Counted from the first letter of the stretch, positions 26,378 through 64,000 are shown. The stretch: DNA of 64,000 nt from Macrostomum lignano (GCA_002269645.1 NIVC01000759.1:124001-188000); one strand, 5' to 3'. Notes: generated by a model not told the origin, from the letters alone. Numbers and translations: made by a program.

Positions 26378-29300
26378 TCAATAAGCCAAAGCCTCCAGGT
26401 GAAGTCCCATTTCATCCAGTTTGTCAATTAAATCCAATGCATGCCTGGTCGAACCAGCATCTGTAATAAAATTTCAGTTTTTGTACATCACGAAGTACTT
26501 TTGCGGATTCCAGACATCCCTTAAATAAGTTTCGAAAAAATTACTAACCATTTGGTGTGTTCATTTCAATGTACTGTTCCTCACGAGTCGAACGGAACGT
26601 TGACTTCAATGACGAAAAGATCCTGTCAATGATCTGGAAAGCCTCTTGCTGCTGCTCGTCGTCGCTGGAGTTGGTCGCATCCGCATAGCTCTCATTCAGC
26701 AGAACCACAAAGATGTTCAGCACTATGAACACGATCGTGAATGTGTAGGAGAAGAACAGGATCTTGTACAGTGCGCTGCGGCTGTCTTCAAAAGTGGCAT
26801 TGAACTTTCCCAGCATCACGGACAGCTGTGTGATCATCGTCTGCATCAGACTGCGGTACTCTCCGTCCACGGGTCCCAGAACCAGATTGGCGATGAAGGC
26901 GAAGGCCAAGAAGATTACGAGAAACACCCAGAAGAACGACCTCAGCTCCGACAGTGAGTTCCTCAGAGTGCCCGACAGGTGGGCCAGACTGCGAGAGTAG
27001 CGGACCAGGTTGAGAAAGCCGATCTGGACAAGGAACATGGCGATGCCGAGGCAGTAGTAGAACGACTCGTCGAAGAACATGACAGTTTCCAGATTGCCAG
27101 AGTTGGAGTTCTGCATGGACTCCAGGGCTGCAACTGTGGCGAAGCTGCGCAGCAGAAGAAACACGAGGCCGGCAATCATGGTGAGGTTTGTGAGCAGGTG
27201 CGACACATTCCACGGATTGGAGAAGTGTTTTGAGAAGCCCTGAAGCCAACAAGACCGCAGTTGCAGTAGCAGCAGTACCAGAGTGATTGCAGCGGCCAGC
27301 AGCTCAGCAAACAGTCGAAGGGCTCCGCTGGCGCCGATGTACCGGTAAAGGCTCGTTGATCGCAGACTGGCGGAGCTCAAGGCACCGCCGAACGGAGGCA
27401 GCTCGGTCAGGATGGACACGGATGTAAAGAAGTTGGTGTCAGGGTAGAACAAGCTGCATTCAAGCAGCACTGCTCGTGTGTAGTTATCAATCCAATGGCA
27501 ATGCGTGGCCTCTTGCAGGAGCGAGAGGGCTTTGGAGAAGTTGTTTGGCAGGTCGAGCACGTAGCCCCTTCCGCTGTATGAGTTGTACGTGCCCCATGTT
27601 GGCCACGGGGTGACCGTTCTGGCGTGGAATGCAGCGTCAAGGCCGCTCCCAGTGTGGTTGCAGGGCAGTTGGGTGCGCCAGCCGATGCCGTAGCAGCTGC
27701 GATCCTCAGTGCTCGCACTGTACTCGGCAGACACTGCCAGAGAGACGCGCCACACGGGACGCACCCTGAGCTGTCGCAGCTTCACGCGACCCAACCGAAA
27801 GCCAACACCATCGGAGATGAACTTCTGCTCAGCTTCACTCAATGGTTGGCCATTCGCAGCCACAGTCGGATAGAGATTCGGTAGAACCGTGTGGTTCAGC
27901 CAGGTGTGAATGTCCTCCCACTTCTGCACCTGGAGTTCGTCAGGGAAGTGCAAACATAAGAAAACAGTGAAAGAAAACAGCTAGCACAGCTCTTATCCCA
28001 ATATTGCAAAAAGGGCCTTATTGCAAACCTTGTCAAGGCTGAACTGAGGACTCGGCTGGTTCACGGTAAGCCGCATCTTCAAGCCGTTGTTCAGGTGAAA
28101 CACGACCGGATCCATGGAGCCATAGCAGACGCAGTACAAAAGGAACAGGTACGCAAGGTTCAGGCCGATGCTGATCGCTGTTGACTTTGCCTTCTTGCGG
28201 AGTGCGTCGTTCGACTGCGATGCGAGGACGTCTTGGAGAAGCATGAACTTCTCTGAAATTTGATGAATAATAACATATTTCTACAGCATAAAAGAAAGTA
28301 TTTCAGAACACTCAAAATCTCACCTCGACCGTCATGAACCTCGCGAACTCGGACGCTGTGGGCATCCATGGAGTCGTAGTCCTTCCTCATCAGCAGAGCC
28401 AGCACCAACCCGACAGCCAACACTTTCAGCGGCTGGAGAAGCAACACCGTCTCAAAGAAGGAAAAGAAAAACGCAAGCAACCAGCCTTCCGACTTCTCCT
28501 TGCCCCAGTCCATTGCATAGAAGACAATGAACACGCCGGCAGTGAGCACACTTAAAACGAGAAGCACCCAACCAACGTACTGGCACCAGTGAGGCAGATA
28601 GAATTTAGAGATCCAGGTCTTCTCTTCCTCCTCAGACTCAGTCTCATCCTCGGTCGTCGCCGCATCGCTGTTGATGACGCGCCGACTTCGACTCGACTGA
28701 GGTCGGTACCGCTGCGCAGGTTCGATATGTTGCGGCTGTCGCTTGGACTTGAGAAACAGCAGGACAGTCGCCATGGACACGGGCAGCACTGTGAGCGCAC
28801 CGAGTATTGAAGTGATGAGGGAGCCGTAGGAAACCTTCACCGGTCCGATTCGGAAGGCCTCCGACGAGCTGTCGGCGACTTCGTACCTGCAGGAATCAGA
28901 CAGGGCAAATCAAGCACGAGGTTGATGGATTTCATTTTACTACTTGTACTCTTTATCCTCATTGTAAAAATGAGATACGTTAAAGTTGAATACACCAAGT
29001 TCGCTCATACCACATGGCATTGGCAATCATCGTCATGAAGAGTAGACTCCAGCACACTCCGAGACGCTGCAATCGACTGAAGTTTGTGTCCACTTTCCGT
29101 CGCAGCATTGAAAACCAGATGTGGTCATCCTGCATCCGTCTGCTCAGGTGATTGCGGACGAGGTTCTTTGAGAACTTGAGGTCGATCGATGAGGCGCAGT
29201 TGACAGCAGAGTCGATGCCCGGACTCAACCAGTCTTCAATCACAAAGATGTACTTGTTGTCATTGGTGCAGTCAGTGACGATCAGGCGACTGACGTACCA

Positions 29301-32300
29301 TCGGCCGGCACCGGACTCGGTCTTGTCAAATGTCAGACAGATGGATCGAATGTCACCCAGATGCGCTTTAGTCGTCATCAGGAAGTTGTCAACACCTCCG
29401 CTTTCAAAGTTCTGTAAGGTTCGAATTGTAACTAATCTGAAAATCAGTTTACCTTGAATCAAAAAATTCGGAAAGTAAAAAAACAAGAAGCTGACCCGTC
29501 TCTCTCCGTCATCCAGAGTTCTCAGTAGCTCGCTCGCATTCAGGCCTTTAACTGAGATGAAGACTCCAACAGGGACTTCATAGCCTCTTTTCGACCCGTT
29601 GAACACCTCAATTTTGTAGACGAAGCCCTTCTGCTCCCGCTCGTCTTTCAGGGGCAAAAATTGAAACTGAAATGAAAGACGACTCACAGTAAGTCAACTG
29701 GTTTACAAGACATAAAACACGACTCATCAGAGCTGGGCTGACTGCTCACCTTCTGTGCGTCCCGCAGGTCCATTCGTCTCAGTAACACTGCCAGAGGAAT
29801 GAACAGAACCCACAGAACGATCACAACAGACAGCACTGCCCTGCTTTCGCTCAGCTTGCCCTGCCAGTTTTCGAACAGCTCGCCGAAGTCGATCGTGTTG
29901 GGCACGAATGAGATTCCAGCTCCGATGCTGCCGAATAGGTTCACCTTGAAAGCCGGCATCGCCACCGCCGTCTGCTCGCTTGCCTGAAAGTTAGAGTGAT
30001 CGATTTGCAAATCAGACTCGAATTCTAGCTCTAAAATTGTGATCTCGACTGTCACTTAAGTCGTCTTACCTGGCACTTGGAGCTATCCAACAGGCGCCAC
30101 TTGTCGACCCCGCTGTCCCATGCGTAGCACTGTTGAGTGGAGATTCCCAGATGATACAGCAAGGTGCAGTTGCTGCAAGTCAGTGAGCCAGACGAGTCCC
30201 TTGAGCAGCCGAGCTTCCTCACTCCTACGAACACCGTTTGGTTAATTGAGAACATATCAGCTGGAATGAAAATCAGCTCCTTTGTTGCGGTGTCATTGTC
30301 GAGTTGAGTGACTGCGGCACTACTCGGTGGAGAGTGTAGTTAAGAGGATCTGGCGCGGTGCCTTCGTGCAGGAAAACTTCGAGCTGATGTCCAGCATCGG
30401 GTTGGATGACGAGCTGGACGACCTCTCCTGTTGCATTGAAGCTGTGATACATCATGAGCCACTTGTCAGTGGGAGTCTTAGCCACTCTGAGCAGCGGTAC
30501 CTGAGCTCCGGCCAGCTGCATCTCATAGGTCGGAGAAGAGGAAGCTGACCGCCTTGATCGCCCACGGGATGGTGGAAAGTCGTAAAAGCTGCATCCTTGC
30601 GATCGTCCACGAAGGAAAGACGTTGTGACTTTGGACTCCGACTGGCTCCAGTGGTACGGATCGGCTGCGCTCATCATGAATGTGATGTTGCATTTGCCGG
30701 ACGGATCTGCCGCGCTGAACCTGGGCAGTGAGACGCTTCCAATATCAGTTCGGATTTTCGCACCTGTAACATTCCCATTAGTTGTGTCCTGTGAGACGCC
30801 TGCAAGTACGAATCCGGGTCGAATTTGAGTGAACTGATCGACCAACTTCAACTGAAGAAGTGCGATGGTGTCGATACAGTTCAGAGTTTTTATCATGATT
30901 CGCTTTACGGAGTCGCGATCGGTGTAGTTATCGGCATAGAAGACTGATGCATTCCAGATACTGAGGCCAGCATCAATTAGTTGGTCTGGAATGTCTTCTT
31001 TTTCTTGTGGCGAGAGATTATTTATCTTTTCGAAGGCTTCATCGCTGAGTTTTGACAAAATCTCAGCGGCGATCTCCTAAAATAAGAAAGATTTTCGTTT
31101 TTGTATTGTAGCTCGTATTTAACAAATCATTTGACTTCATAGATATTTTGAGTGTCTTTGCTGTCGTCTCTTTTGCAATTAATAGAAAATGTTTGCAGAC
31201 AACCATTGGCGTCTGCAAAATGGATTTTGACTTAAAAACACAATATAGTCATCAGCTTAATCCCCATACGCAAAAAAATTGTGAACCGCGAAAAGGGACT
31301 AGTTATTCGAGGTAAGGTATAATGAAATGAGAATTTTCGCTTGCTTTTCGAGCCATGTTAATCTTGCTTCTTCATATTGCTTCTGATCATCAAAGTCATC
31401 ATTTTGTTTGAGCCAGACTGATTGCGGTAGTCAAAAAGCTAAATTGGTTGCAGATCAATAAAATTCGACATGCAGATTTGCCAAGTTCAACTGTAGAATA
31501 CGAAAAAGAATACCTTTGGGCATCGCATTCTTGTTGGGTTCTCAAAAACGCCTCTTTCACTGCTAAGGTGAGATGGAATACTATTGTATCGATATTTGGA
31601 CGAACCAAGTGACTTCATCCTTAACTGAACCGTTTAACCATTTAAAAAGCTTCAGTTTATCCAAACATGCTTTTTTAGATGGTGTTTGACTGAATTTAAT
31701 ACCAAGTGTAGCTATTTTTCGGTTAACTATTGATGCATCGTTTGCATGTGTCCAAAGGGCCTCAAATTTTTGGAATATAAGAGCTTCGCTGAAAACAAAC
31801 GAGAAATGTCTGTCTTACCTGACCAGCAATGTCCAGCTGCGAAGGAATTTTCACTCCATGCATCAGCAAGCCGGATGTGATCCCGAGTCCAGAAGTTGTA
31901 TTTAAAAAAACAGGGATGAAGCTAAGAAACTTCCAACGGAGCTGAAATTATTAATTTGCTACCTATCTTGAACAGGTTTTTATATCAGGATAATGTAAAT
32001 CGATAATAAAAAATCTTAAGTTTGATCAGCTCTAAAATTGATTATCAAGCTCAGCTTAAAGGTAATTATTTTTATTGTTTTTTTGTTATCCCATGTTATC
32101 CTGTTTAACTCCTGGAATACCTGAACTTTGATTTCTGCTGGTGACCGTAAAACAGTTTTACCTCTGAAATCTTCGCAAGAAAACTTCCTTCAACGTCCTC
32201 TTCGTAAGAATCTAGCAGCAATGCAACTGATTGCATGGCAACTAAAGCCGCCTCGAGGTCGCCAACTGAGATATGCTTTGCTACAATTGAACTGTTGCCA

Positions 32301-35300
32301 CTCAATAGGTTTTCCAACATTGCTGTCAGCTCGCTTGTTGACAGAGCCAGTTTATGGATCTAAGGATTGCATTAGTGCGGTAAATTTCTTTTTATAGTCA
32401 GTCAGAAAAGAGGGAACTCAAATGTAAGAATAATATATTTACATACTTACCGAGAAGGTAAAATTGTAGTATTGCTGCGCTCCAAATGAATCTGAAACTA
32501 CGAATTGAACAACAGCCCAGCTACTGTCACCCAGCGGCAGCATCACTCTTGGACTAACAGCATTCGTCGAGCTGAATAAACTGTAGCGCTTGCCAGATTG
32601 CGGTAAAATTAGCATTGATTCGTAAAGTAGGGGAGCCACCGCTGCGCCGAACTCCGTCCAATTTTTGCATAGCAGCTGCACATTTGTCTTTCTGGAAATT
32701 ACTGAAGAAATTCATTGATTTTTTATTAGCTCTGTTTCATTTACTGAAAAAAAGGAAAAAAATTAAAACTTTTCGAATGTCCCCTTATACCTCCAGGAGG
32801 ATCCACGCGACAGGTACCACCTACTGGAGGCCCATTCACGGTTATGTTGGCAACAAGGTTTGAAATCTCTTGACCCAGATTCCACAGCTGTCCCATCACT
32901 CTGTAGTAGGAGCTCTCCATCAGTGTGCCAGCCGAAATCGAGAGCTCCTGGCCATCGCTGCTTGACTGGCGAGTTCCCTCGATCTCGTATCCGCTGACAC
33001 CGAGCCGAACAATCGTCAAGTTGCTGCTCACGGTAAAGAACTTGTGGCCACAGTTCTGCTCGCACACAAGTCTGTAGACAAGCGGCCTCTTGGCGACAAC
33101 TTTGGCTCCGCAGTTCTGCTCGCAATCAAGTCGGCCTACAGGCTTCGGCTGTGACTCAACAAACACAGTCTTTGATTGCCAAACCTCTCTGGTGTCTTTT
33201 GTAAGACGGACTCGGAACACATAGCTTGCGTTCGGAACAAGATCGAACGAGTTCACAGTGAGGGATCCCGCAATGGATGCGTTTCCCAAGTACACGACAC
33301 CGGGTCCGTTACCGAAGCAGCCTCTCAGTTCCGAGAGCGCTCTGGCTTCAGTCTGCGATGGGATGCTGATGGTGTTGGCTGAGTCTGACTCTTCAGGTCT
33401 GAAGCAGCTCCACTGAAACGTCATGCCGCTAAGATCTCCATCTTCCACGTCAAAGTCCGTGGCCGTCGCAGACGCATTTAGCACGAAGGTCTGATTGAAT
33501 GAAACATATTCCGGACCAGTAATAGCTTCTAGACTCAATGGAGTCTTTGAGACGTTCAGCAATATCCACGCAGTCTCTGCCATAGCAGCATCCACAGTCA
33601 GCTCGGCAGTGAATGAGACATTGTACAGCCCGTATGGCAACACCCGACGCTGAACCAAGCACTGATCGGAGTTGTCAGTGCACAGAGGAAGTTCGATAGA
33701 TGATTGTACAGCAATGATGGTCCAGTATGTGCTGATGTTGGTCAGCTTGGAGCAGTTGTATGGCGCCACGGCAGTAAGGTTAACCTGCTCGGACCTTCTC
33801 TTTGTCAGCACTGATGTCACTTGCAATGGAGATGCGTCCAAGTCAAACAGTCTCAGCCTTGGCTTGTAGCAAGGGATGTCAATCACGGTTGCGAATGTTT
33901 GCGCCGAGTCATTGCTCACGTTGTTAAAAGCGAAAACAAAAACGGGTATCACGCCAACAACAGGGAAAACGCGTTTCCATTTGATCTGTAGGTCGTTTTG
34001 AGTAATTATTGTGTAAGTCGCGTTATTTCTTGTTGCGATCGACCGACACGATTCTGATACACCAAATATCTCGTTCGGATTTTCTGAAGCATTGTAGTAT
34101 ACTTCAATGCATGTTTCATAAGCCACTCTAGTCATGTCAAGCATGAATTCGGTCGGCATTCCGATCCAAACCGTTCGGTTTGTGCTGAGGTTGGCTATTC
34201 TTACAGAATCAAGCAGTAAATTAAGGGAAAAGTTTGCTGTTACTCCATTGACACAGACAGGACTTCTGCACCACATGCTTACAAGTTGTATTCCGATTGC
34301 CTCAGCTGGGTACTGGAAAGAGACCGATATATTAGAGCTACCAGTCAAACTCTGAGCAAAAATTCGTTTGGAGCCAAATATAGAAAATTGAAAATCACAT
34401 AAAACAAGTCCTGCTTCCATCGATGGTAAATTGTTAAGAACAAACTGGACCATTTCGTAGGGCCAAAGAACGCTTTGTCTGTAGGTGACGGATACGTTGA
34501 TCAGTGGATTCAAAACAACGATTGGGTTGATCTGAGCTGTTTTCCAACTCACTGGGTTCGAGGCGTTGACTATAACAGTGTAGTTTCCTGCAGTTGAGTA
34601 CGAGTGCGCCAGCACAATCTCATTGCTCGAGGCGTACTTGCTCGGGTGAAAGGTAACACTGTTTGGGGTGGAGTCACCAAATCTTGTTGTCAATTCGACT
34701 GAAGTTCCATTGGACACTCGTATGGTAATACTCAAGTTTTGACCAGGCTGGACAAACACGTGACTGGCATTGGCTGTAAGTCCTGACACTGGCTCATTGC
34801 ACACCACTGTTGAGTTTTTGGCGTACTGACTCACTAGATTCCAGCAGCGAACTGACAGAGTCATTTCCTCAGCGATGAGGTTCGGAGGACACTCAAGAGT
34901 CACAGTTTCGGTGGATTTTGATGCTGAAACGTTTTGGAACTGATTCAGTAGACTGAACTCTGGTCCTGCAGCAAGGTTAACTTTGCAGCTCACATTTGTA
35001 GGTACTGCTCCGGTGTGGGTCACCGGAAAGTAAATGGTCGGCGTTGCGGCATGAAAATATGCCGACTGAGCCACTGCAGCGATAGGATTCTGCACAATAA
35101 TTCCTGATACAGTTGAGCTCTCGTTGTTCATTGGGCTAGAAGCCAGAACGTGAATGTCATAAACTCCAGGTGCATTGAATGTGTGGGTGATGTTAATGGG
35201 CTGTGCATAGGACACAGGCTCAGGATGCACAATCACTTGGCTTGTACCATCAGTCATTTTCACCGTGTAGGTGACATCAGTACCATTTTGAACAGTGAGC

Positions 35301-38300
35301 TGCAGTGGAAACTGCTCACTTGTGAGCAATACAGATTTATTGATTTTGATTTCAACGCCCTCGATTTCAAATGGTGTGTAGAGCCGAAGCTCAAAGTTTT
35401 TCGAGTACGCACCACCTGTGTTCGTGCAGCGAACATTTGATGTAACAACCGATTTTCCAGGTTCATAAATGTAAGAAATGCTTGGTGGTTCGTCATAATA
35501 AATAAAAAAATTGGAGTACGTCTCTTTTCTGTTCGAATAGAGTGTAACTGTGCATGTGACTTTGAGAAACGATCCTGGCTTCTCATTTACGAAACCAAAA
35601 AAGAAAGTCACATTGTTTGGAGCTGGTAAACGTTCGTAATACGCTTCAACTTTAAGTGCCGCTGCTGGTGCAGGACTGACAAGAAAAGTTCCATTCGCAT
35701 TGAACTCACTAATATTACTTCGGCAGTAAACATTGTAGCTGAATTCCCGATATTGGCCGGAATATAGATAGGTGATACTTATATTTTGTCCTCTGAAGCT
35801 GTCCAAAGAACCATTTTTCCTCCAATTCCAAGTAGTATTTATGCTCTCTTCAAGTGAAATGTCGCAATCAACGTATGTTCCATATTTCCAACTAATCAGA
35901 AATGTGTAGCTCTTGTCTGGTAACACAACCAACTCATTTGTTATTGTTTGGTTAATGATAGGGAGACCTGAAAGATACATAGGATAAATATTTAACTTGA
36001 ACAGAGCTACGATAACAACAACTGTACATAAATGTACGAGTATATCTTAAGTTTGTGTTGGATCCTTTTATTCTTACCTTCACGAATAAATGGTTTCGGA
36101 GCGTCGATACACCTTCTGTTGTTAGCCAAATTTTCATCAATAAAGCTTGGTGACACCCAGTTGATCATGTCTGCACAAATCGTCATGTTCCGGTGGGTAC
36201 TATTAATGCACTGGTCAAATTTAAGTATAAAAGCAACAGTGCACTGCATCGTCATTGTAGCACCAGATTGTAGACCCAGTTGAGTGTCCTTATCAGCGCA
36301 CTTTGCACTCTCCATTATCGAAATAACTGTGCCTAGGTCATCTGTGAAGTGCAGTGTAACATATGGCGAAAAGTTGATACTCGAAGAAACGACTGGATCG
36401 ATCCTCGAGCCGCCGGAATTTCGAACCAAAAACTCGATTGTCTCGTTGTGCCGGTATTCTGGGATCCAGGGATTAAATTTTAGGCCCGGAATCACCGTCA
36501 TTGCATCCAGGGAAATATCCGAAACTAAAATAATTGCAAAGTAACAGCGCTCGTAGAATTTTTATTATTTATTCCAAGCTGCATTTGTTTAAGGAATGTA
36601 AAAGCGAAAAAAGAATAAACTTACAGATATCACAGTAAGTTGCAACTGACTGACAAGCAATGTTATTGCTGAGGTATACCTCGGTGTAAGTTGAATTCAC
36701 AGAATTCCTAAACAAGATGCACAAGTGTGTTGTCGTGTTGCATTGGGTCTGATTAACTTCGAATTGAGGAGACTGAACGCTGAAAGAGAAATTGTCCCCC
36801 TGCGAGTAATGCGCCTTGAAAATTGCTTCGTTTGTGACCAGCAGGGGAATTTTCAAAACAGAGTCGTCAAGGCACCTCTGTATTAAGACATCATCTGTCC
36901 CAAAGCTCGTGCAGTCGCTCGTGACAAAGTGCAACGTCACGTTGAAGTTGACGTCGCTCGATAATTCCAGAATGGGGAAGCTAGCATTGTTGACGCGAAC
37001 TGTTAGGTTGTAGGCAACAACCACATTCTTGTGCCTTTCAATTGGGTTCGGAGTCAAACTCGTCAAATTAGCTTTTAGCAGCTCCGTGTCACATTCTGGC
37101 TGACAGGTTTTATAGCCATCGATATCCAAACAGAGTGCATTGTTGTTTGGGTTCATATCACGGACTGTTTCGTTCTCTGTAGCCAATAATCCTATGCATA
37201 GATAAGATGAAGACCAACACTGACCTCCCTTTGGTGTAACAAAGTCAGTAGAGATGTCAAACTCAAACTCTTCGTACAGTTTGTGACCAGCATGTAGGTC
37301 CCCTTGAATTAGCGTCACAGGGTTGTGCTTGAAGTAAAAGATCGGGTCAGCGGGAGGATAGACCGCTGACGATTTGTTGAGAAAGTACGTGAAGAAGTTT
37401 GCCAAAACTTTAGGCGGAGAGGAAGCTGGAATATCGGCATTTCCACGGAAATGCTTCATTCTTACGGTAGCTACATAGCGACTTGACATGCCTCTTATCG
37501 GATCTATTTCAAACGTAGCGTTTATAAAGATGACGCTCATGTCGATTGTAATATTGCAGACGGATAAACTCTGATCTGGTAGATTAGCACAGCTGCACTG
37601 TGGTGTGAGTAAATCTCCTCTTGGAACGCACGCTGTTCGGTTCTCACTAGAGCAATCAAAATCCGTAGTGCAGGGGTCACCTACATTACCAGGCTCGATG
37701 TCTGAAGTGGTGGAAAAGGACACAAAATGGCTCGTTCTAATACGTCAAACAAAATTGAAAAACTAATTTTTCTTCTTTTTAAAGGCGTAAAACTAGGAAA
37801 AGAAATTACCATCTAGGATCATCTTCGGCGCAAACAGCCGCATTCGAACCGACACACCGCTGTCGGCAGGCAGGTCTGGCATCCATCGAGGAGCTCCGTT
37901 CGAATCTGCTGCCAGCTTGATCAGATTTTTGCCATCGCACTGACTTTGCCACCACGGTGAGAGCGGCTGGGCACAAGACAGGTTTGAGAACAGGCCGAAC
38001 TGAGCGTTGTTCAGCTCAACAAAGGTGTACTCGTCCAGAGTTCCCGTCCGGCAGTCTTTCGCGTGCATCGGGTAGCCGCCCGCTCGAGACCCGACCCACC
38101 ACTCTTTGCACTCGACATACTTGCCGAGTCCCTGCGAGTTCGTGGCCTCCAGCCTCAGTGCCAGCGGCCACTGACTTGCAAAGTATGTCGGCAGCAGCTC
38201 GAGGAAGTCGAGTCCGGTCCAGAAGCTCATCTGGTCAGCTTGCGTGAAGTTGAAGTCCATGGCGGGTCGGTCCAGAGCGAATCCAGTGCGGTAGTCGACT

Positions 38301-51702: not shown

Positions 51703-51818
51703 GAGTGTGGAAGGTGTGCTCAGACAGAAAACGGGGCAAACTAAACTAGTAAAAGAAAAATAAATATTTGTTTTTAGGTTCATTATGTTTTTTTAAACTG
51801 ATCTTGCTCTCATGTAAC

Positions 51819-54800
51819 TCAACGAAGTCGGCTTCCAACGTGCCACTGCAGTTCTTCAATTCTCTCCATCAGGGACGCAGCTCGACCGTCCAAACCTGGG
51901 CAAGTGGTATTTTTAGAACGATTTGGAAAGCGCTGTTAAGCGAAATTCTTCTTATCAAGTTGCTTACTAATCAAATACTTCGTCAAATCTACTGACCTCA
52001 AAGTCAGTTTCATTCTGTCCAAACAGGGTTACTACGAGTATATAAAGGAAAAATTTCGACATGTCCAATTTCCAGCTTTTTCAGAAGCCAGCTTCTGAAG
52101 CGCACCTTTGTAATAAGCGAAAATAAAATGGTCTGTCCTAGCTTGGAATTCGGTGAGGATAATATATGAGCAAAAAAAGCTAAAGGCTTTTAAAAACAGG
52201 AACATACCATTTGGATTGTCTGAATCAATGTACTGTGCGCGACGCTCCGAATGAAAAACGGACTTGAAAGTCTGAAAAACGGTGTCGATGACCTGGAAAG
52301 CCTCTTGCTGCTGCTCGTCGTCGCTGGAGTTGGTCGCATCCGCATAGCTCTCATTCAGCAGAACCACAAAGATGTTCAGCACTATGAACACGATCGTGAA
52401 TGTGTAGGAGAAGAACAGGATCTTGTACAGTGCGCTGCGGCTGTCTTCAAAAGTGGCATTGAACTTTCCCAGCATCACGGACAGCTGTGTGATCATCGTC
52501 TGCATCAGACTGCGGTACTCTCCGTCCACGGGTCCCAGAACCAGATTGGCGATGAAGGCGAAGGCCAAGAAGATTACGAGAAACACCCAGAAGAATGACC
52601 TCAGCTCCGACAGCGAGTTCCTCAGAGTGCCCGACAGGTGGGCAAGACTGCGGGAGTAGCGGACCAGGTTGAGAAAGCCGATCTGGACGAGAAACATGGC
52701 GATGCCGAGGCAGTAGTAGAACGACTCGTCGAAGAACATGACAGTTTCCAGATTGCCAGAGTTGGAGTTCTGCATGGACTCCAGGGCTGCAACTGTGGCG
52801 AAGCTGCGCAGCAGAAGAAACACGAGGCCGGCAATCATGGTGAGGTTTGTGAGCAGGTGCGACACATTCCACGGATTGGAGAAGTGTTTTGAGAAGCCCT
52901 GAAGCCAACAAGACCGCAGTTGCAGCAGCAACAGTACCAGAGTGATTGCAGCGGCCAGCAGCTCAGCACACAGTCGAAGGGCTCCGCTGGCGCCGATGTA
53001 CCGGTAAAGGCTCGTTGATCGCAGACTGGCGGAGCTCAAGGCACCGCCGAACGGAGGCAGCTCGGTCAGGATGGACACGGATGTAAAGAAGTTGGTGTCA
53101 GGGTAGAACAAGCTGCATTCAAGCAGCACTGCTCGTGTGTAGTTATCAATCCAATGACAATGCGTGGCCTCTTGCAGGAGCGAGAGGGCTTTGGAGAAGT
53201 TGTTTGGCAGGTCGAGCACGTAGCCCCTTCCGCTGTATGAGTTGTACGTGCCCCATGTTGGCCACGGGGTGACCGTTCTGGCGTGGAATGCAGCGTCAAG
53301 GCCGCTCCCAGTGTGGTTGCAGGGCAGTTGGGTGCGCCAGCCGATGCCGTAGCAGCTGCGATCCTCAGTGCTCGCACTGTACTCGGCAGACACTGCCAGA
53401 GAGTCGCGCCACACGGGACGCACCCTGAGCTGTCGCAGCTTCACGCGACCCAACCGGAAGCCAACACCATCGGAGATGAACTTCTGCTCAGCTTCACTCA
53501 ATGGTTGGCCATTCGCTGCGACAGTCGGATAGAGATTCGGTAGAACCGTGTGGTTCAGCCAGGTGTGAATGTCCTCCCATTTCTGCACCTGGAATTCGTC
53601 AGGGAAGTGCAAACATAAGAAACAGGGAGCACAGCTTTTATCCCAATATTGCAAAAAGGCCTTATTGCAAACCTTGTCAAGGCTGAACTGAGGACTCGGC
53701 TGGTTCACGGTAAGCCGCATCTTCAAGCCGTTGTTCAGGTGAAACACGACCGGATCCATGGAGCCATAGCAGACGCAGTACAAAAGGAACAGGTACGCAA
53801 GGTTCAGGCCGATGCTGATCGCTGTTGACTTTGCCTTCTTGCGGAGTGCGTCGTTCGACTGCGAAGCGAGGACGTCTTGGAGAAGCATGAACTTCTCTGA
53901 AATTTGATGAATAATAACATATTTCTACAGCATAAAAGAAAGTATTTCAGAACACTCAAAATCTCACCTCGACCGTCATGAATCTCGCGAACTCGGACGC
54001 TGTGGGCATCCATGGAGTCGTAGTCCTTCCTCATCAGCAGAGCCAGTACCAACCCGACAGCCAACACTTTCAGCGGCTGGAGAAGCAACACCGTCTCAAA
54101 GAAGGAAAAGAAAAACGCAAGCAACCAGCCTTCCGACTTCTCCTTGCCCCAGTCCATTGCATAGAAGACAATGAACACGCCGGCAGTGAGCACACTTAAA
54201 ACGAGAAGCACCCAACCAACGTACTGGCACCAGTGAGGCAGAGAGAATTTAGAGATCCAGGTCTTCTCTTCCTCCTCAGACTCAGTCTCATCCTCGGTCG
54301 TCGCCGCATCGCTGTTAATAACGCGCCGACTTCGATTCGACTGAGGTCGGTACCGCTGCGCAGCTTCGGTATGTTGCGACTGTCGCTTGGACTTGAGAAA
54401 CAGCAGGACAGTCGCCATGGACACGGGCAGCACTGTGAGCGCACCGAGTATTGAAGTGATGAGGGAGCCGTAGGAAACCTTCACCGGTCCGATTCGGAAG
54501 GCCTCCGACGAGCTGTCGGCGACTTCGTACCTGCAGGAATCAGGCAGGGCAAATCAAGCAAGAGGTTGCTGGATTTCATTTTACTACTTGTACTCTTTAT
54601 ACTCATTGTAAAAATGAGATACGTTGAAGTTGAATACACTCATACCACATGGCATTGGCAATCATCGTCATGAAGAGTAGACTCCAGCACACTCCGAGAC
54701 GCTGCAATCGACTGAAGTTTGTGTCCACTTTCCGTCGCAGCATTGAGAACCAGATGTGGTCATCCTGCATCCGTCTGCTCAGGTGATTGCGGACGAGGTT

Positions 54801-57800
54801 CTTTGAGAACTTGAGGTCGATCGATGAGGCGCAGTTGACAGCAGAGTCGATGCCCGGACTCAACCAGTCTTCAATCACAAAGATGTACTTGTTGTCGTTG
54901 GTGCAGTCAGTGACGATCAGGCGACTGACGTACCATCGGCCGGCACCGGACTCGGTCTTGTCAAATGTCAGACAGATGGATCGAATGTCACCCAGATGCG
55001 CTTTAGTCGTCATCAGGAAGTTGTCAACACCTCCGCTTTCAAAGTTCTGTAAGGTTCGAATTGTAACTAATCTGAAAATCAGTTTACCTTGAGTCAAAAA
55101 ATTCGGAAAGTAAAAAAACAAGAAGCTGACCCGTCTCTCTCCGTCATCCAGAGTTCTCAGTAGCTCGCTCGCATTCAGGCCTTTAACTGAGATGAAGACT
55201 CCAACAGGGACTTCATAGCCTCTTTTCGACCCGTTGAATACCTCGATTTTGTAGACGAAGCCCTTCTGCTCCCGCTCGTCTTTCAGGGGCAAAAATTGAA
55301 ACTGAAATGAGAGATGACTCACAGTAAGTCAACTGGTTTACAAGACATAAAACACGACTCATCAGAGCTGGGCTGACTGCTCACCTTCTGTGCGTCCCGC
55401 AGGTCCATTCGTCTCAGTAACACTGCCAGAGGAATGAACAGAACCCACAGAACGATCACAACAGACAGCACTGCCCTGCTTTCGCTCAGCTTGCCCTGCC
55501 AGTTTTCGAACAGCTCGCCGAAGTCGATCGTGTTGGGCACGAATGAGATTCCAGCTCCGATGCTGCCGAATAGGTTCACCTTGAAAGCCGGCCTCGCCAC
55601 CGCCGTCTGCTCGCTTGCCTGAAAGTTAGAGTGATCGATTTGCAAATCAGACTCGAATTCTAGCTCTAAAATTGTGAGCTCGACTGTCACTTAAGTCGTC
55701 TTACCTGGCACTTGGAGGTGTCCAACAGGCGCCACTCGTCGACCCCGCTGTCCCATGCGTAGCACTGTTGAGTGGAGATTCCCAGATGATACAGCAAGGT
55801 GCAGTTGCTGCAAGTCAGTGAGCCAGACGAGTCCCTTGAGCAGCCGAGCTTCCTCACTCCTACGAACACCGTTTGGTTAATTGAGAACATATCAGCTGGA
55901 ATGAAAATCAGCTCCTTTGTTGCGGTGTCATTGGTCGAGTTGAGTGACTGCGGCACTACTCGGTGGAGAGTGTAGTTAAGAGGATCTGGCGCGGTGCCTT
56001 CGTGCAGGAAAACTTCGAGCTGATGTCCAGCATCGGGTTGGATGACGAGCTGGACGACCTCTCCTGTTGCATTGAAGCTGTGATACATCATGAGCCACTT
56101 ATCAGTAGGAGTCTTAGCCACTCTGAGCAGCGGTACCTGAGCTCCGGCCAGCTGCATCTCATAGGTCGGAGAAGAGGAAGCTGACCGCCTTGATCTGCCA
56201 TGGGATGGTGGAAAGTCGTAAAATCTGCATCCTTGCGATCGTCCACGAAGGAAAGACGTTGTGACTTTGGACTCCGACTGACTCCAGTGGTACGGATCGG
56301 CTGCGCTCATCATGAACGTGATGTTGCATTTGCCGGACGGATCTGCCGCGCTAAACCTCGGCAGTGAGACGCTTCCCATATCTGTTTCCACCTTCGCTCC
56401 AGTGACATTTGCATCCTGAACGTCCTGTGTTATGCCCATTAGAGCGAAGCCGGGTTCGACCTTCGTGAAGTTGCTGACAGACTCAAGTGCTAGAAGCCCG
56501 ATAGAGTCAATACAGTCGAGTGTCTTCAGCATAACACCTTTGACGATGCTGCGGTTACTGTAGTTGCCAGCCCAAAATCCAGAGGCATTCCAAATGCTCA
56601 GCCCTGATTTGAGTTGATTGTCCTGAATTTCTTCGCTGGCTTTGTGCGACAGGTTCGCTCTTTCGATACGCGCTTGCTCGATGACTTTTCTCAAAGTTTT
56701 TGCTGCAAGTTCCTATAGCGATCGCGGAAAAGAAAATGCAAAAGTTCGAACTTTGCGTATTGTAGTTTAATTGAAAATTATTACCTGTCCAACGACATCC
56801 AACTGGCTTGATGTATTCACCCCAAGTCGCAGCAGGCTTGTTGTCATTTGCAATGCATCCGAGGAGAAGTTAAACGGAAAGGCGTCAACAAACTTTAAAT
56901 ATTTCAGTCTCATCTGCAATATTTTACAGGATAGCCAAATTTTCTCTTTCAGTATTGACAATTTCACTGAACGGAAAATTAAAATTTTTCATTGATTACC
57001 GTCGCCATCTGCAGCTGGAATGCGGCCAGATCGTCTGGAGACAATGCTGCTCCTTGGGCATCTTCGTTCCAAGCATTCATGGCCAGCGCGATTGACTTCA
57101 AAGTGACTGCCGCGGCGCTGTAGTCACCGGAGGACAAGAACCTGCTGACTATCGAATTGGCAGGATCCAGTAGGCCTTCTAAATCAGAAAGCAACTCGCT
57201 TGATGTGCCCGTCAGAGCCGAAATCTAAAACATTGACAGCATTTCTTGTTCTAGTGGTTCTTTCTAGACCAAAAATTTGACTAAAGATTCAGTGAGCAAG
57301 GCTTTCAGACTGACTGAAATGTTGACGGTGAAGATCGCCTCTGCGTAAAAAGAATCCGTGATTTTAAACTCAATGGTGCCCAAGCCGTTGCTTGCTCCGA
57401 CAGGCAGCAAAACAGTTGGAAAACTGGCGCTACTGGAGTCGAATCGAGTCGGCGACTCAGTCGGATTCCACCGGAAGAGTGTTGCCGAGTACGCCAGTGG
57501 AGCAACGAATGCTCCGAATTCCGTCCAGTTGGCGCAGGTCAGATGGGCCAGCGTCCTTATGTTAACCACTGAAGTAAATATAGATGAAATACATACAGGA
57601 GACCAGATCTGTTTCAGAGTTGAGTCACACAATGCTTGCGATCCAATAAAAATTGTCATAAAGGTCAGAAAATCTTAAGGAATGGTAAACTTTTCTCATC
57701 TTTAATAAGACGCTGCACAAAATAAAAATAGATAGGTGCAAAGCAATCTGCAAAACTGGTATTAAATTGCTAGCACATACCTCCAGGAGGATCCACGCGA

Positions 57801-60800
57801 CAGGTACCACCTACTGGAGGCCCATTCACGGTTATGTTGGCAACAAGGTATGAAGTCTCTTGACCCAGATTCCACAGCTGTCCCATCACTCTGTAGTAGG
57901 AGCTCTCCATCAGTGTGCCAGCCGAAATCGAGAGCTCCTGGCCATCGCTGCTTGACTGGCGAGTTCCCTCGATCTCGTCTCCGCTGACACCGAGCCGAAC
58001 AATCGTCAAGTTGCTGCTCACGGTAAAGAACTTGTGGCCACAGTTCTGCTCGCACACAAGTCTGTAGACGAGCGGTCTCTTGGCGACAACTTTGGCTCCG
58101 CAGTTCTGCTCGCAATCAAGTCGGCCTACGGGCTTCGGTTGTGACTCAACAAACACAGTCTTTGATTGCCAAACCTCTCTGGTGTCTTTTGTAAGACGGA
58201 CTCGGAACACATAGCTTGCGTTCGGAACAAGATCGAATGAGTTCACAGTGAGGGATCCCGCAATGGATGCGTTTCCCGAGTATACGACACCGGGTCCGTT
58301 ACCGAAGCAGCCTCTCAGCTCTGAGAGCGCTCTGGCTTCAGTCTGCGATGGGATGCTGATGGTGTTGGCTGAGTCTGACTCTTCAGGCCTAAAGCAGCTC
58401 CACTGAAACGTCATGCCGCTAAGATCTCCATCTTCCACGTCAAAGTCCGTGGCCGTCGCAGACGCATTTAGCACGAAGGTCTGATTGAATGAAACATATT
58501 CCGGACCAGTAATAGCTTCTAGACTCAATGGAGTCTTTGAGACGTTCAGCAATATCCACGCAGTCTCTGCCATAGCAGCATCCACAGTCAGCTCGGCAGT
58601 GAATGAGACATTGTACAGCCCGTATGGCAACATCCGACGCTGAACCAAGCACTGATCGGAGTTGTCAGTGCACAGAGGAAGCTGGGTAGATGATTGTTCA
58701 GCAATGATGGTCCAGTATGTGCTGATGTTGGTCAGCTTGGAGCAGTTGTATGGCGCCACGGCAGTGAGGTTGATTTGCTCGGACCTCCTGATTGTCTGCA
58801 CTGATGACACTTGCAATGAAGATGAGTCCGAGTCGAACAGTCTCAGCCTTGGCTTGTAGCAAGGGATGTCAATCACGGTGGCAAATGTTTGCGCCGAGTC
58901 ATTGCTCACATTGTTGTAGGCGAAAATCAAGACAGAATGGACGCCTACTTTTGATAGATCTCGCTTCCAGGTGATTCGCAAGTTAGAGGGACTGACCTGT
59001 GTATAGGCTGGACTGTTCGGTGTTGCGATGGAACGGCAGGAATTATGCGCACCGAAAATTTCATTAATTAGGCTGGTCTGATTGTAGTACATGTGAATGC
59101 AGGTATCGTTTGGGAAACTTGTCATATCAAGCACGAATTCGACCGGCGTGCCAAGCCAAACCGTCCCGTTCGTGCTAAAGTTGGCTATTTTTACAGAGTC
59201 CTTGAGCACAACTATTGAAAAGTTCCGCTCGAGACCATCAATGCTCAATGGGTTCCAGCAGCTCATGCTCACACGCTGAGTTCCAATGGCTTCTACCGAA
59301 TATTCGAATGTCACAACTGCGTTTGAGCTGTCCGTCAGGTTTTCGATGAAGATTCTTTTCGATCCGTATGTGGAGAACTCGAAATCGCAAACAACGAGAC
59401 CAGCTTGCATATTGGGCTCATTGTTGATGACGAACTCAGCCCCCTCAAACGGCCACAGAACGCTTTGTCTGTAGGTGACGGATACGTTGACCAGTGGATT
59501 CAGTACAACGATAGGACTGATCTGAGCTGTTTGCCAACTCACTGGATTCGAGGCGTTGACTATAACAGTGTAGTTTCCTGCAGTTGAGTACGAGTGCGCC
59601 AGCACAGTCTCATTGCTCGAGGCGTACTTGCTCGGGTGAAAGGTAACGCTGTTTGGGGTGGAGTCACCAAATCTTGTTGTGAATTCGACTGAAGTTCCAT
59701 TGGACACTCGTATGGTAATACTCAAGTTTTGACCAGGCTGGACAAACACGTGACTGGCATTGGCTGTAAGTCCTGACACTGGCTCATTGCACACCACTGT
59801 TGAGTTTTTTGCGTACTGACTCACTAGATTCCAGCAGCGAACTGACAGAGTCATTTCCTCAGTAATGAGGTGCGGAGGACACTCAAGAGTCACAGTTTCA
59901 GTGGATTTTGATGCTGAAACGTATTGGAACTGATTCAGTAGACTGAACTGTGGTCCTGCAGCAAGGTTAACTTTGCAGCTCACATTTGTAGGTACTGCTC
60001 CGGTGTGGGTCACTGGAAAGTAAATGGTCGGTGTTGCGGTATGAAAATATGCCGACTGAGCCACTGCAGCGATAGGATTCTGCACAAGAATTCCTGATAC
60101 AGTTGAGCTCTCGTTGTTCATTGGGCTAGAAGCCAGAACGTGGATGTCATAAACTCCAGGAGCATTGAATGTGTGGGTGATGTTAATGGGCTGTGCATAG
60201 GACACAGGCTCAGGATGCACAATCACTTGGCTTGTACCATCAGTCATGTTCACCGTGTAGGTGACATCAGTACCATTTTGAACAGTGAGCTGCAGTGGAA
60301 ACTGCTCACTTGTGAGCAATACAGATTTATTGATTTTGATTTCAACGCCCTCGATTTCAAATGGTGTGTAGAGCCGAAGCTCAAAGTTTTTCGAGTACGC
60401 ACCACCTGGGTTTGTGCAGCGAACATTTGATGTAACAACCGATTTTCCAGGTTGATAGATGTAAGAAAAGCTAAGCGGAACTTCAAAGTAAAATTTGATG
60501 TCCTGATAAGATTGTGCTGCGCCTGAATAAAAGGTAAAGGTACAGTTTAGTTTTAAGTATCCTTGAGCTGCAGTTAGCGTACCAAATACAAAGGTAACAT
60601 TGTTTGGTTCCGGCAAGCGCTCGTACGAAGTTGTGATGTTTAACAAGCTGGCTGGATTCGGACTGACCAGGATAAGTTTTGTTTCTTCAAATTGGCTTAT
60701 TTCATTGCTGCAACTGTAGTTAACTAAGTATTCGCCATACGGCTGATTTAGCACGTGACTGACGGTAAATCTATATTTGCGGTAGCTGTCAATGCTTCCA

Positions 60801-63800
60801 TTTCGCTTCCAATTCCATGTGGCGTTGTACCCGTCCTGGATGAATATGACGCAATCCATGTAGGTGCCGGAAATCCAATAGAGCTCAAAAGTAGCCGCGA
60901 CGTTAGATAAAGTAAATTGCGGATTCTTTGCTTTTGGCCCAGTAATTTTAAGACCTGAAATTTTAATTTAATCTCTTTTTATAATTTAGTTCATAGATTT
61001 TCTTACCCTGGGATATTACTAACAATGAGTTAAAGGAGGGGCACAGCAAACCTTACCTGCGCAATCAAAAACTTTTGATATTGTGATGTCCTTCCAGTTG
61101 TTTTCTAAATTTGTGTCCACGTAGCTCGGATTGTCGGAATTGATCATCCCAACACGCAAAGTCACCTGCTCCGTCGTGCACTGCTGGAAGGTTAATAGGA
61201 ATGCAGCATCGCATATAACATTGGCAATCTGACCGACCAGCTGAATTCCTTGAGTTCGATCCTTTTCGATGCAGTTGATTCCTTCCATAACTAGCGGAGC
61301 AGTGGATGCATTTTGAAATAGGAATGAAATGTTGGGTTCGAAATTGATGCTGGGAGACAGCACGGGGTCGATCTTCGACCCGCTGAGCAGTCGAACTCCA
61401 AATGAGAAAGACGCGGTGTGGCGATACTCCGGAACCCACGGGTCGGTTGCATTGGGAAGCAGCGCTACAGTCTCCAGCGCAGCGTCCGAAACTGAAATCA
61501 AATTTATTGCTTTCTGCAATTAGCTACTTACGGGATAGATTGAATAATTTTTCGACAATCTATAAAACAAAGAACTATATCAATAATCCAAATGCATTCT
61601 AAGCAAAAGTCAAAAGTTCCATCCTCCCAAGATTGCGCGAGGCTGTTATGTATAAACGTATTTATAATCTTATTCTTTAAATACAATTTAATCCTTTGCG
61701 AGAACTTACTAATCGTGCAAAATGTCTCAACCGGATGGCATGCCAAGCTGTTGCTGATGTTGCTCTCCGAGTAGGACGAGTTCACTGAACTCGTTAGCAG
61801 GACACAGAAATGCGTCGTCTTGTTGCACTGATTTTGGCTTATTTCAAAAAGTGGAGCGTGGACGCTGACAGAAAAAGTGTCTCCGCTAGTGTACCCGCTC
61901 TTGAACACTGACTCGTTTGTGGTTTTCAACTCCACGTTAAATACAGAATTGGACAGGCAGAGTTTAGTTTGGCTTTCACTGCCTTCCAGATTCTGACAGT
62001 CACTTGTTACCAGATACAACAGTGCCATAAAGTTGTTTTCATACTCTGAACTCATTATAGGGCTGTTGAGATTCTTAACGAGTACCGAGAGATGGTACGA
62101 CACGGAAACATTTTCATGTCTCACCAAAGGATTCGGACTCAAATGGAACAATGTAAAATTGGATATTTCCGTGTCTCCTATTGGCTGACACACCTTCACG
62201 CTGTCAATGTCCATGCAGAAAGCGTTATTAGTCGGGTCGGAGTCGCGCACCGTTTCATTTTCCGACGCGCTGAAGCCGATGCACAGGTAGGACGCTGAGA
62301 CGCACTGGCCTCCTTCCGGCATCGTGAAGTTGGCGGTTATGACGAACTCAAACTCCTCATAAAGCTTATATGAGCCTTGCAGGTTGCCTTCAATGACAGT
62401 CACAGGGTTGTGTTGGAGGTAAAACTCCTGGTCAACTGGAGGATACACGCTTGACGACTTGTTCAGAAAGTAAGAGAAAAAATTCGCCAGAACTGTTGGC
62501 GGAGCAGCCTCTGGAATGTCGGCGCTGCCACTTGCGTGCTTCAGACGGATTGTTGCCGTGTACCGACTGGCGCAGCCGCGAACCGGCACTGGGTCGAAAG
62601 TAACGTTAAAAGCAACGATGCTCATGTCCACCGTGATGGTGCAGACTGGCTGGCCCTGGTCTTGAAGATTCGCGCAGCCGCACTGAGGCGTGAGCGCTGA
62701 GCCACGAGGAATGCACACGGTCATATTCTCACTTGAGCACTCGGCATCCATAGTGCACGCATCGCTCACCTGGCCTGATTCTGTTGCTGAATTCGAATCG
62801 AGATAGGTAAAGGCAAATGAGTTGAGCAATAATTAATGAACCAGAGAGTCTAGCTATATAACGCAACTTTGAGTGTAAACAGTGTGTTTCTCACCCTTTG
62901 GGATCATCTTCGGCGCAAACAGCCGCATTCGAACCGACACACCGTTGTCGGCAGGCAGGTCTGGCATCCATCGAGGAGCTCCATTTGAATCTGCTGCCAG
63001 CTTGACAAGATTTTTGCCATCGCACTGACTTTGCCACCACGGTGAGAGCGGCTGGGCACAAGACAGGTTTGAGAACAGGCCGAACTGAGCGTTGTTCAGC
63101 TCAACAAAGGTGTACTCGTCCAGAGTTCCCGTCCGGCAGTCTTTCGCGTGCATCGGGTAGCCGCCCGCTCGAGACCCGACCCACCACTCTTTGCACTCGA
63201 CATACTTGCCGAGTCCCTGCGAGTTCGTGGCCTCCAGCCTCAGTGTCAGCGGCCACTGACTCGCAAAGTATGTCGGCAGCAGCTCGAGGAAGTCGAGTCC
63301 GGTCCAGAAGCTCATCTGGTCAGCTTGCGTGAAGTTGAAGTCCATGGCGGGTCGGTCCAGAGCGAATCCAGTGCGGTAGTCGACTGGGTGCGTCCGGTCT
63401 CCAGGTTCGGGGACAGCTTCTGGTACACGACCAGGGAGTTTCGGAAGCAAGGCAGGGTGGCGGATCCGAGGTAGGGGTGCTCGAGCGTTACTGATTGAGT
63501 GCCATTGCAGATTGCCTGATCAATCACTGTAATGCGCATTGTCAAATAAACAAATGGATCTGAAGTCATTATGAATTTATGTTGCTGGTAATAATGGAAG
63601 CAATTACAAGCTTTGGCATCTTGCCTGTTAGGTTTTTCGCTCGGACGAAAAGATCCATTTTGATTCCTAAGCTGCGATCCCACGTTGTCGTCAACCGCAG
63701 TTTGTCCGTGTAGGCCAGGTTAACGATGAGGTAGTACACCGGGGTGAAAATTGTCGACTTCGGTATCTTTACTGGAGCCTGGAACAGAGTTTCAGGACAT

Positions 63801-64000
63801 GCGATTAAAGCCAACTCTCTGCTCTCTGTTGAAGTCACTTTTTAGTCAATGAAGAATAAATTAATAATATTCCTAATATTCTTAATAATAATAATATTTT
63901 TGGTACTGAAGCCAATTTTCATTGGTTTTATTTAAACTGAAGGTCGATTCACTAACAGCATAGCTTGCTTGCGATTAACGTCATGACGCGTCTGGTGGAA
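51819..64000 (-). CDS. PKD1L: Polycystin-1-like gene, copy 2 (5' part beyond the window). Exons include ~63526-62895 (FReD, frameshifted), 60954-57781, 56712-55705, 55618-55385, 55301-55131, 55046-54646, 54530-53968, 53896-53673, 53588-52208, 51895-51819
   Basis: Same exon order and domains as copy 1, offset by ~25.0-25.7 kb; channel, PLAT, REJ and FReD segments are nearly identical to copy 1. A 1-nt deletion lies at ~63388. Confidence 0.85.

Follow-up and report, generated by a model that had tools for sequence, protein, structure and literature searches.

Two polycystin-1-like receptor/channel genes stand as direct tandem repeats, 25.6 kb apart and both on the minus strand, in a 64,000-nucleotide stretch of the Macrostomum lignano genome (GCA_002269645.1 NIVC01000759.1:124001-188000), which we refer to as the window. 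Copy 1 spans 26378..46938 and copy 2 spans 51819..64000, with the 5' part of the latter lying beyond the window edge. Aligned to each other, the two genes form a mosaic in which four near-identical blocks (1.4-3.0% different) alternate with blocks that are 36-48% different or cannot be aligned. The mosaic is also seen at neutral sites, it has several age layers, and the trees of its individual blocks contradict each other. The most probable explanation is that interlocus gene conversion, limited by homology, has recurred among old paralogues, with at least three members of the family involved.

Copy 1 was delimited by its Pfam domains, by its match to the UniProt gene model P0001 and, for the tail and the terminal exon, by the models P0016 and P0018, and copy 2, a gene of the same type, by tblastn and k-mer mapping of the models P0004 and P0006. 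Read from its 5' end, copy 1 consists of N-terminal exons, the exons F, B and C, a big exon D of 3.2 kb with PKD repeats and REJ, and the exons E, E2, E3 and X, which are followed by the first transmembrane segment (TM1), PLAT, further transmembrane (TM) exons, the channel exon and a terminal exon. Its 5' extent was placed from open reading frames (ORFs) at 41262-41657 and 46429-46938, which by eye resemble the N-terminus of model P0015, and from a blastn match of L001, a locus of a third paralogue described below, to 46085-46316. Copy 1 has Pfam matches to PKD, REJ, PLAT, Polycystin_dom and PKD_channel. Exon D matches PKD (PF00801, 4.5e-24) and REJ (PF02010, 6.5e-35; 2.6e-46 in model P0011), the segment after the first TM helix matches PLAT/LH2 (PF01477, 2.8e-8 in the window and 7.1e-9 in P0011), and the last large exon matches Polycystin_dom (PF20519, 7.3e-34) and PKD_channel (PF08016, 3.5e-21). 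P0011 is a full-length relative whose domain order is the same as that of the window genes. Neither exon X nor P0011 has a Pfam match to the GPS domain, and the GPS autoproteolysis motif is not seen before TM1, where the gene models join ...KCQ to ASEQTAV... without an HL-T motif. The predicted architecture is that of the polycystin-1 (PKD1/REJ) family, apart from the undetectable GPS motif. The family assignment is based on the PKD repeats/REJ, PLAT, the polycystin domain and the channel. Exons F, B and C have no match in Pfam. The closest matches outside the M. lignano family are vertebrate polycystin-1 proteins, at merely 26-28% identity. Searches with the big exon of copy 1 and with the channel exon matched solely gene models of copies 1 and 2, and a concatenated copy-2 query revealed the third paralogue. 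No sequence from other Macrostomum species turned up in any homologue search, and a literature search on the name of the gene cluster gave no match.

A patchwork of near-identical and strongly diverged blocks in these tandem paralogues had been proposed from inspection of the DNA alone (the sequence-only reading), and blastn returned exactly the blocks that had been claimed. Copies 1 and 2 match at 26624-30750 versus 52283-56386 (97.99% over 4128 bp), 32787-33939 versus 57777-58930 (96.6%), 34461-35482 versus 59451-60472 (97.0%) and 37816-38413 versus 62901-63497 (97.5%); beyond these four blocks there is one weak 75% match and nothing more. A MAFFT global alignment segmented with a two-state hidden Markov model agrees. 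It provides the block borders used in the following, which are given in copy-1 coordinates and all refer to the minus strand, together with p, the proportion of sites that differ. Permutations lead to the same result: the longest run of identity between the copies is 362 bp, compared to at most 83 bp in 2000 permutations, and 61 of 111 alignment windows of 100 columns are at least 95% identical, versus at most one in the permutations.

The first near-identical block, termed the channel block (26634..30740; copy 2: 52293-56376; p = 0.014), comprises the 3' part of exon X, TM1, PLAT, the TM exons, the channel and at least six introns. Within its coding parts the proportions of synonymous (pS) and nonsynonymous (pN) differences are 0.037 and 0.005, respectively, and it is ~98.5% identical to the third paralogue (copy 3) as well. 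The second block (32787..33919; copy 2: 57777-58909; p = 0.030, pS 0.077) is the REJ part of exon D; one of its borders is the exact donor site of this big exon, and its three-way tree is star-like. The third block (34467..35478; copy 2: 59457-60468; p = 0.029, pS 0.065) covers PKD repeats of exon D, and here copies 1 and 2 are alike, while copy 3 is 19% different. The fourth block (37816..38400; copy 2: 62901-63484; p = 0.021) is essentially exon F. As judged from the splice sites, it begins 29 nt past the acceptor and stops 6 nt short of the donor, with unalignable introns on both sides.

The diverged block 35479..37815 (copy 2: 60469-62900; p = 0.44) holds the 5' part of exon D, exons C and B and three introns, and shows 40-55% amino-acid identity at a pS of 0.75-0.86. 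Inside exon D, the block 33920..34466 (copy 2: 58910-59456; p = 0.41, pS 0.91) is in frame and of equal length in both copies. It encodes ~174 codons, or about two PKD-like modules, with an amino-acid identity of 55%, and in this segment copy 2 is 97.3% identical to copy 3. The block 30741..32786 (copy 2: 56377-57776; p = 0.48), made up of an intron, the three exons E, E2 and E3 and one third of exon X at its 5' end, exceeds its copy-2 partner by 646 bp and has an amino-acid identity of 35-50% and a pS of 0.73-0.78. Finally, the cytoplasmic tail, the last intron and the terminal exon (26378..26633; copy 2: 51819-52292) are diverged too, the terminal exons of both copies being confirmed by P0016/P0018 and P0024, and all three paralogues leave the shared channel block at one common position. 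No alignment is obtained for the flanks of copies 1 and 2 on either side, for the upstream intron, for the terminal exon or for the introns within diverged blocks.

In total there are eight switches in 12 kb, each of them sharp within ~5-15 bp. The sequence-only reading had put switch points inside exons. This is true for five of the eight, which lie well inside exons at 26634, 30745, 33920, 34466 and 35479 and include the switch after SVLWP, where YEMVQF in one copy is opposed to FEGAEF in the other. The other three coincide with splice sites: 32787 is the donor of the big exon, 37816 lies 6 nt before a donor and 38413 lies 29 nt after an acceptor. That three of the eight tract ends are found at splice sites beside unalignable introns is expected for homology-limited tracts.

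We then turn to the sites that are least exposed to selection on the protein. By the Nei-Gojobori method, the near-identical blocks (2101 codons) have a pS of 0.051 and a pN of 0.010, and the diverged blocks (1103 codons) a saturated pS of 0.80 and a pN of 0.33, at 35-55% amino-acid identity. In all diverged coding segments but one (seven of eight), pS is 0.73-0.91; the exception is the tail of 33 codons with a pS of 0.41. Synonymous divergence (dS) is therefore clearly not uniform along the gene, which is in line with the proposal of gene conversion. In six introns of the channel block, certain or probable, the two copies disagree at 14 of 491 sites (p = 0.029), which is about the level of the silent sites. 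Because introns and silent sites differ alike, the identity of the near-identical blocks indicates recency rather than protein-level constraint, and the earlier argument that near-identical introns speak against protein-level selection alone holds. The near-identical blocks still differ at 131 sites, with an excess of silent changes and a ratio of nonsynonymous to synonymous divergence (dN/dS) of ~0.19. Thus, the copies are distinct evolved sequences and neither a collapsed duplicate nor the result of random errors. In every block where it can be measured, dN/dS is below 1: it is 0.04 in the channel and 0.11-0.62 in the variable ectodomain blocks when copies 2 and 3 are compared, the variable blocks between copies 1 and 2 being saturated. 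The duplication itself, as the sequence-only reading had proposed, is old, because neither the two flanks nor the terminal exon nor the introns in diverged blocks can be aligned and the silent sites of these blocks, except in the tail, are saturated.

Copy 3 was reached via cluster members of model P0007, which led to the NCBI models BOX15_Mlig017700g7 and g9 (assembly Mlig_3_7, GCA_002269645.1); the numbering in these names would suggest a family of about nine loci. Its two loci, L001 on NIVC01000759.1 and L002 on NIVC01000874.1, differ by ~1%, a value that fits the subgenome copies described for M. lignano. Copy 3 aligns along the whole unit shared by copies 1 and 2. Its 5' intron is 99% identical to that of copy 2, and its 3' flank cannot be aligned. 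It occupies L001 10001-27324 and L002 10001-25390 and, unlike copy 2, is not followed by a copy-1-like gene in the next 10 kb. With L001/L002 as copy 3, the block distances for the pairs copy 1-copy 2, copy 1-copy 3 and copy 2-copy 3 are.52 /.52 /.008 in the 5' intron,.021 /.033 /.026 in exon F,.44 /.46 /.18 in exons B and C and the 5' part of D (D5'),.028 /.193 /.196 in the PKD block,.41 /.40 /.027 in the middle of exon D (D-mid),.030 /.029 /.024 in the REJ block,.51 /.50 /.15 in exons E to the 5' part of X (E-X5'),.014 /.013 /.017 in the channel block and.50 /.55 /.53 in the tail and 3' flank.

These distances translate into trees that depend on the block. Most variable blocks group copy 2 with copy 3 to the exclusion of copy 1, a single 1-kb PKD block groups copies 1 and 2 to the exclusion of copy 3, and the channel, REJ and exon F blocks give a star. 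Informative sites in the PKD block support copy 1 with copy 2 at 178 positions versus 14 and 11 for the two other groupings. In the other variable blocks, copy 2 sides with copy 3 at 1492 of 1720 sites (Fisher test against the PKD block, P = 4e-120). Block-wise counts and the Fisher test were used for this comparison, since a 3SEQ-like maximum-excursion statistic is uninformative with site counts as unbalanced as these. Moreover, copy 2 turns from copy-3-like to copy-1-like and back to copy-3-like exactly at the switch points between copies 1 and 2. To judge from its sequence, copy 2 is a visible chimera, with a PKD block of copy-1 type in a background of copy-3 type. Block-wise trees with other paralogues had been suggested as a check, and the topology does change between blocks once L001/L002 are added; the proposed shuffling of ectodomain modules is borne out by the same PKD block. 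Copy 2 carries copy-1-type sequence amid copy-3-type sequence, and copy 1 is unchanged in the flanking blocks, which by parsimony would be compatible with conversion. The simplest reading is a single conversion of ~1 kb from copy 1 to copy 2, its direction being deduced by parsimony from the three lineages. Both this direction and the non-reciprocal nature of the exchange are what we infer from the sequence.

Several observations point to more than one round of exchange. The dS values between copies 2 and 3 fall into tiers of 0.03-0.08, 0.14-0.23, 0.45-0.69 and, in the tail, 1.55. In the PKD block, the copy-1 type and the copy-3 type differ by a dS of 0.45, and the adjoining copy-1-specific blocks are saturated. 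A dS of 0.45 beside saturated blocks indicates an exchange at an intermediate time in addition to the recent one. The four near-identical blocks shared by copies 1 and 2 are heterogeneous in their divergence (chi-square P = 4e-4), and divergence is 3.1% within 200 bp of the switches versus 1.6% in the block interiors (P = 3.5e-4). Copies 1 and 2 on the one hand and L001 and L002 on the other share 12 variable positions, compared to 1.16 expected (P = 1e-9), and have the same two bases at 11 of them. The models P0016 and P0018, which represent copy 1, carry copy-2-type residues at three channel positions at which copy 1 in the window differs. These signals at the level of single nucleotide polymorphisms would fit an exchange that continues. 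The claim of recent segmental gene conversion was right as to its recency at neutral sites (pS 0.051, intron p 0.029), and it has to be revised in that the exchange is layered and three-way and not one event between two genes.

Within the channel block, copy 2 has clusters of private differences at sites where copies 1 and 3 agree, at 30465-30723 (10 sites) and 28673-28735 (6 sites) in copy-1 coordinates; their clustering points to additional short tracts or to a donor outside the sample. In the tail of copy 2 (52206-52300), model P0004 differs at 5 of the 18 residues that follow directly 3' of the channel block, a local hotspot at the switch. Elsewhere P0004 deviates from copy 2 of the window in two short stretches alone (338-342 and 483-485), which resemble differences between gene models.

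Whatever assembly they stem from, the UniProt models were not called on this window, and they reproduce both mosaics. They carry the linkage of the blocks over six switch points for copy 1 and seven for copy 2. P0001 matches copy 1 at 1711 of 1712 aligned residues, and P0006 has 24 mismatches to copy 2 in 2529 aligned residues, about half of which lie at approximate exon ends. P0001 and P0002 represent copy 1 and P0008, P0023 and P0024 represent copy 2, P0024 having exactly the copy-2 tail and terminal exon. By their residues, P0004, P0006, P0021 and P0022 most likely correspond to a slightly different copy of copy 2, namely a subgenome copy. These models bear on the question of whether reads of paralogues were misjoined or cross-polished among three near-identical subgenomes, creating false blocks or false linkage. 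Collapsed and chimeric or mosaic sequence of paralogues is a known feature of M. lignano assemblies, and 93% of read pairs map to several places (PMC10733133). Moreover, each copy has a 1-bp homopolymer frameshift of the kind that is typical of long-read errors. One is a deletion in exon X of copy 1 (30297, minus strand; C versus CC), a position at which the frame is intact in copy 2, in copy 3 and in every protein model, and the other is a deletion in exon F of copy 2 (63385, minus strand; CCC versus CCCC), where the UniProt models P0006 and P0008 are intact and read GRTPVDY. Both look like assembly errors, the alternative being very recent pseudogenisation. The nature of the 131 differences in the near-identical blocks is nevertheless unlike random errors or collapse, the UniProt models reproduce the linkage over the switches, and the third paralogue, located elsewhere in Mlig_3_7, has the same block borders. 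We thus consider an assembly or polishing artefact very unlikely as the source of the mosaic. A simple false tandem duplication of haplotypes was ruled out by the diverged flanks and the saturated blocks.

Recurrent gene conversion probably produced the mosaic in the following way. Copies 1, 2 and 3 are old polycystin-1-like paralogues, each probably with near-identical subgenome copies, between which repair by ectopic homologous recombination would repeatedly copy tracts of ~0.6-4 kb. As the process needs homology, conversion would continue solely in the blocks that are still near-identical: the PLAT/11-TM/channel core, introns included, together with exon F, the REJ-encoding part of exon D and some of the PKD repeats. 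Conversion would end where homology is lost, be it in diverged introns, in the tail or wherever a tract reaches a module that has long escaped conversion. Such modules would by now be too different to pair and would be frozen as gene-specific ectodomain and tail modules. Selection may plausibly also keep the tail and the variable modules of the ectodomain from being homogenised. The outcome would be several receptors with one common channel core and with differing outer and C-terminal parts.

Reciprocal exchange by repeated unequal crossing-over or double crossovers, producing chimeric genes as in the globin fusion genes along with changes in copy number, would be favoured by the arrangement of copies 1 and 2 as direct repeats 25.6 kb apart and by the chimeric structure of copy 2, and a short double crossover and a conversion tract are inseparable by sequence alone. 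However, eight alternations in 12 kb with tracts of 0.6-1.1 kb would need many precisely paired crossovers, crossovers with copy 3, which lies elsewhere and has no copy-1-like neighbour within 10 kb, would cause rearrangements, and the shared blocks are of several ages. We therefore regard reciprocal exchange as quite unlikely. The mosaic might also be turned around, with a recent duplication of copies 1 and 2 as the origin of the near-identity and the diverged blocks imported later from unsampled paralogues. The broadly similar divergence of the four near-identical blocks (1.4-3.0%) would agree with this, and so would the patches between copies 2 and 3 (in the middle of exon B, in exon C and in D5') that have no donor among the sequences seen. 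Yet the unalignable flanks mean that such a duplication would have started and ended inside the gene, which would itself be a conversion; the near-identical blocks differ in age; and imports from donors of 55% identity would meet the same homology problem as conversion. A history of this kind is highly improbable. Selection alone, that is extreme purifying selection on the near-identical blocks and rapid positive selection on the diverged ones after a recent duplication, has in its favour that the channel core is the most constrained part of the gene (dN/dS 0.04). It fails on the neutral-site data, which rule it out: introns and synonymous sites of the near-identical blocks are as similar as the proteins, silent sites in the diverged blocks are saturated everywhere but in the short tail, the introns of these blocks are unalignable, and dN/dS is below 1 where measurable. 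It is almost certainly wrong.

Some points weigh against recurrent, homology-limited gene conversion or limit what it explains. Non-reciprocity and direction are derived by parsimony from three lineages, without an outgroup species. Conversion cannot begin at 55-60% identity and would hence need either continuous homogenisation since the duplication or intermediates that were not sampled, an objection that is removed for the shared blocks because they never started from that level. M. lignano subgenomes diverge by 2.2% genome-wide and by 1.1% in coding sequences (PMC10733133), and the divergence of the near-identical blocks (1.4-3%) is close to this value and to that between L001 and L002 (~1%), so that the exchange may fall before or after the genome duplication. 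Site patterns cluster significantly in the REJ block (P = 0.002) and not in the channel block (P = 0.14). The gradient towards the block edges, the shared polymorphisms and the private clusters could in part be consensus artefacts, due to collapsed paralogues and multi-mapping reads, and are more open to such errors than the rest of the evidence. Finally, the signal of GC-biased conversion is weak. Third-position GC is 0.47-0.81 in the shared blocks, compared to 0.35-0.55 (copy 1) and 0.47-0.61 (copy 2) in the diverged blocks, being lower in copy 1 than in copy 2 in each diverged block except the short tail. Intron GC is 37.5% in the shared block versus 28% and 34% in diverged blocks, and singleton changes are mostly from GC to AT (84 versus 52).

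A further possibility, which we consider unlikely, is that the patchwork is a maintained design, in which conversion policed by selection would keep one PLAT/11-TM/channel core and leave the ectodomain modules and the tail distinct and occasionally swapped. If so, one common channel partner would be expected across family members and subgenome copies, the receptors would form a small combinatorial set on sensory cells or the sperm surface, and the tail hotspot 3' of the channel block would mark the specificity for a partner or for signalling.

The sequence-only reading had labelled the block at ~37820-38400, which is essentially exon F, as a fibrinogen-related domain (FReD). This label finds no support. 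Exon F has no match in Pfam at E<=5, Fibrinogen_C included, and none among PDB sequences at E<=10, and no homologue outside the polycystin-like family was found among 1.84e9 representative proteins. A single-sequence AlphaFold2 model, with a pLDDT (predicted local distance difference test) of 41, is too poor for a fold comparison. What remains is a loose motif resemblance (FWTGLD..., ...WW..C), which we take to be reminiscent of a FReD. An RNA-mediated conversion was considered for exon F and was ruled out, as the channel block keeps its introns.

Mosaic interlocus conversion is familiar from gamma-globin and opsin genes. It has been described, with persistent islands of divergence, for HMA4 of Arabidopsis halleri (bioRxiv 10.1101/2025.10.29.685298), and further for the GOT1 paralogues of Tigriopus (PMC3728101) and for Caenorhabditis paralogues (PMC3966223). 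As in these last three cases, islands of divergence are interspersed with tracts that are homogenised down to their introns and silent sites, tract ends are sharp and trees are discordant. What differs is the contrast between ~98.5% identity and saturated dS within one exon, the eight switches in 12 kb, the involvement of three or more paralogue lineages and the setting in a genome that has three subgenome copies. The human PKD1 gene exchanges sequence with six pseudogenes on 16p13.1 by gene conversion (PMC2564946). The two systems have in common a polycystin-1 gene, nearby duplicated copies and gene conversion. However, the partners of human PKD1 are young truncated pseudogenes, whereas those in M. 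lignano are old, full-length and apparently under purifying selection, with the exchange confined to blocks. Large PKD1/REJ families are known from the sea urchin (PMC1934368). Like PKD1, PKD1L1-3, PKDREJ and the sea-urchin REJ proteins, the genes described here combine PKD repeats, REJ, a PLAT domain after TM1 and a C-terminal Polycystin_dom plus PKD_channel; unlike those proteins, they have no Pfam GPS and they possess lineage-specific N-terminal modules. The sequence-only reading had also compared the locus to diversifying receptor arrays. Snail fibrinogen-related proteins (FREPs) and antigen-variation cassettes are such diversifying families built by conversion, and they too move modules between family members on a shared scaffold. 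The analogy is unproven here: dN/dS of 0.04-0.62 gives no sign of positive selection in any block, only three paralogue lineages came to light, silent donor cassettes are lacking, and a fibrinogen domain could not be detected. The locus is a very clear new case of a familiar process and is not conceptually new.

The mosaic is of practical value to those who work on M. lignano and illustrates how gene families evolve. Probes, RNA interference triggers, guide RNAs and mapped reads that fall into the channel, REJ or exon F block will hit all family members and their subgenome copies; paralogue-specific targets are found solely in exons B and C, D5', D-mid, E-X and the tail. Whole-gene trees, orthology calls and dN/dS scans of the M. 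lignano polycystin-1-like family will give wrong results if the blocks are not treated separately. For polycystin biology, the genes are a natural domain-swap series in which the same channel core is combined with different ectodomains and tails. For the theory of gene conversion, they provide an unusually clean instance of homology-limited conversion with frozen divergence islands in a genome with three subgenome copies.

Other features of the window lie around the two genes. The 4.9-kb spacer between copies 1 and 2 contains the remnant of a Ty3/gypsy-type retroelement (48265..51116, plus strand) with Pfam matches to zf-CCHC, aspartyl protease, RVT_1, RNase H and rve. It is split over several ORFs and is absent from the repeat unit of copies 1 and 2. 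Neighbouring features are a reverse-transcriptase fragment (22100-23131, minus strand), an ORF for a FEZ-like protein (20486-21664, plus strand; PF07763, 7.7e-22) and an ORF with leucine-rich repeats (17427-17972, minus strand). Within copy 1, an intron of the N-terminal part holds a 45-bp tandem repeat of ~12 copies (42227-42757). At least a dozen unrelated minisatellite arrays, with up to ~99 copies and periods of 43/87, 43-50, 15, 22, 28, 20, 44/88, 26, 6, 22, 25, 30 and 91 bp, fill most of the 17 kb at positions 1-17303.

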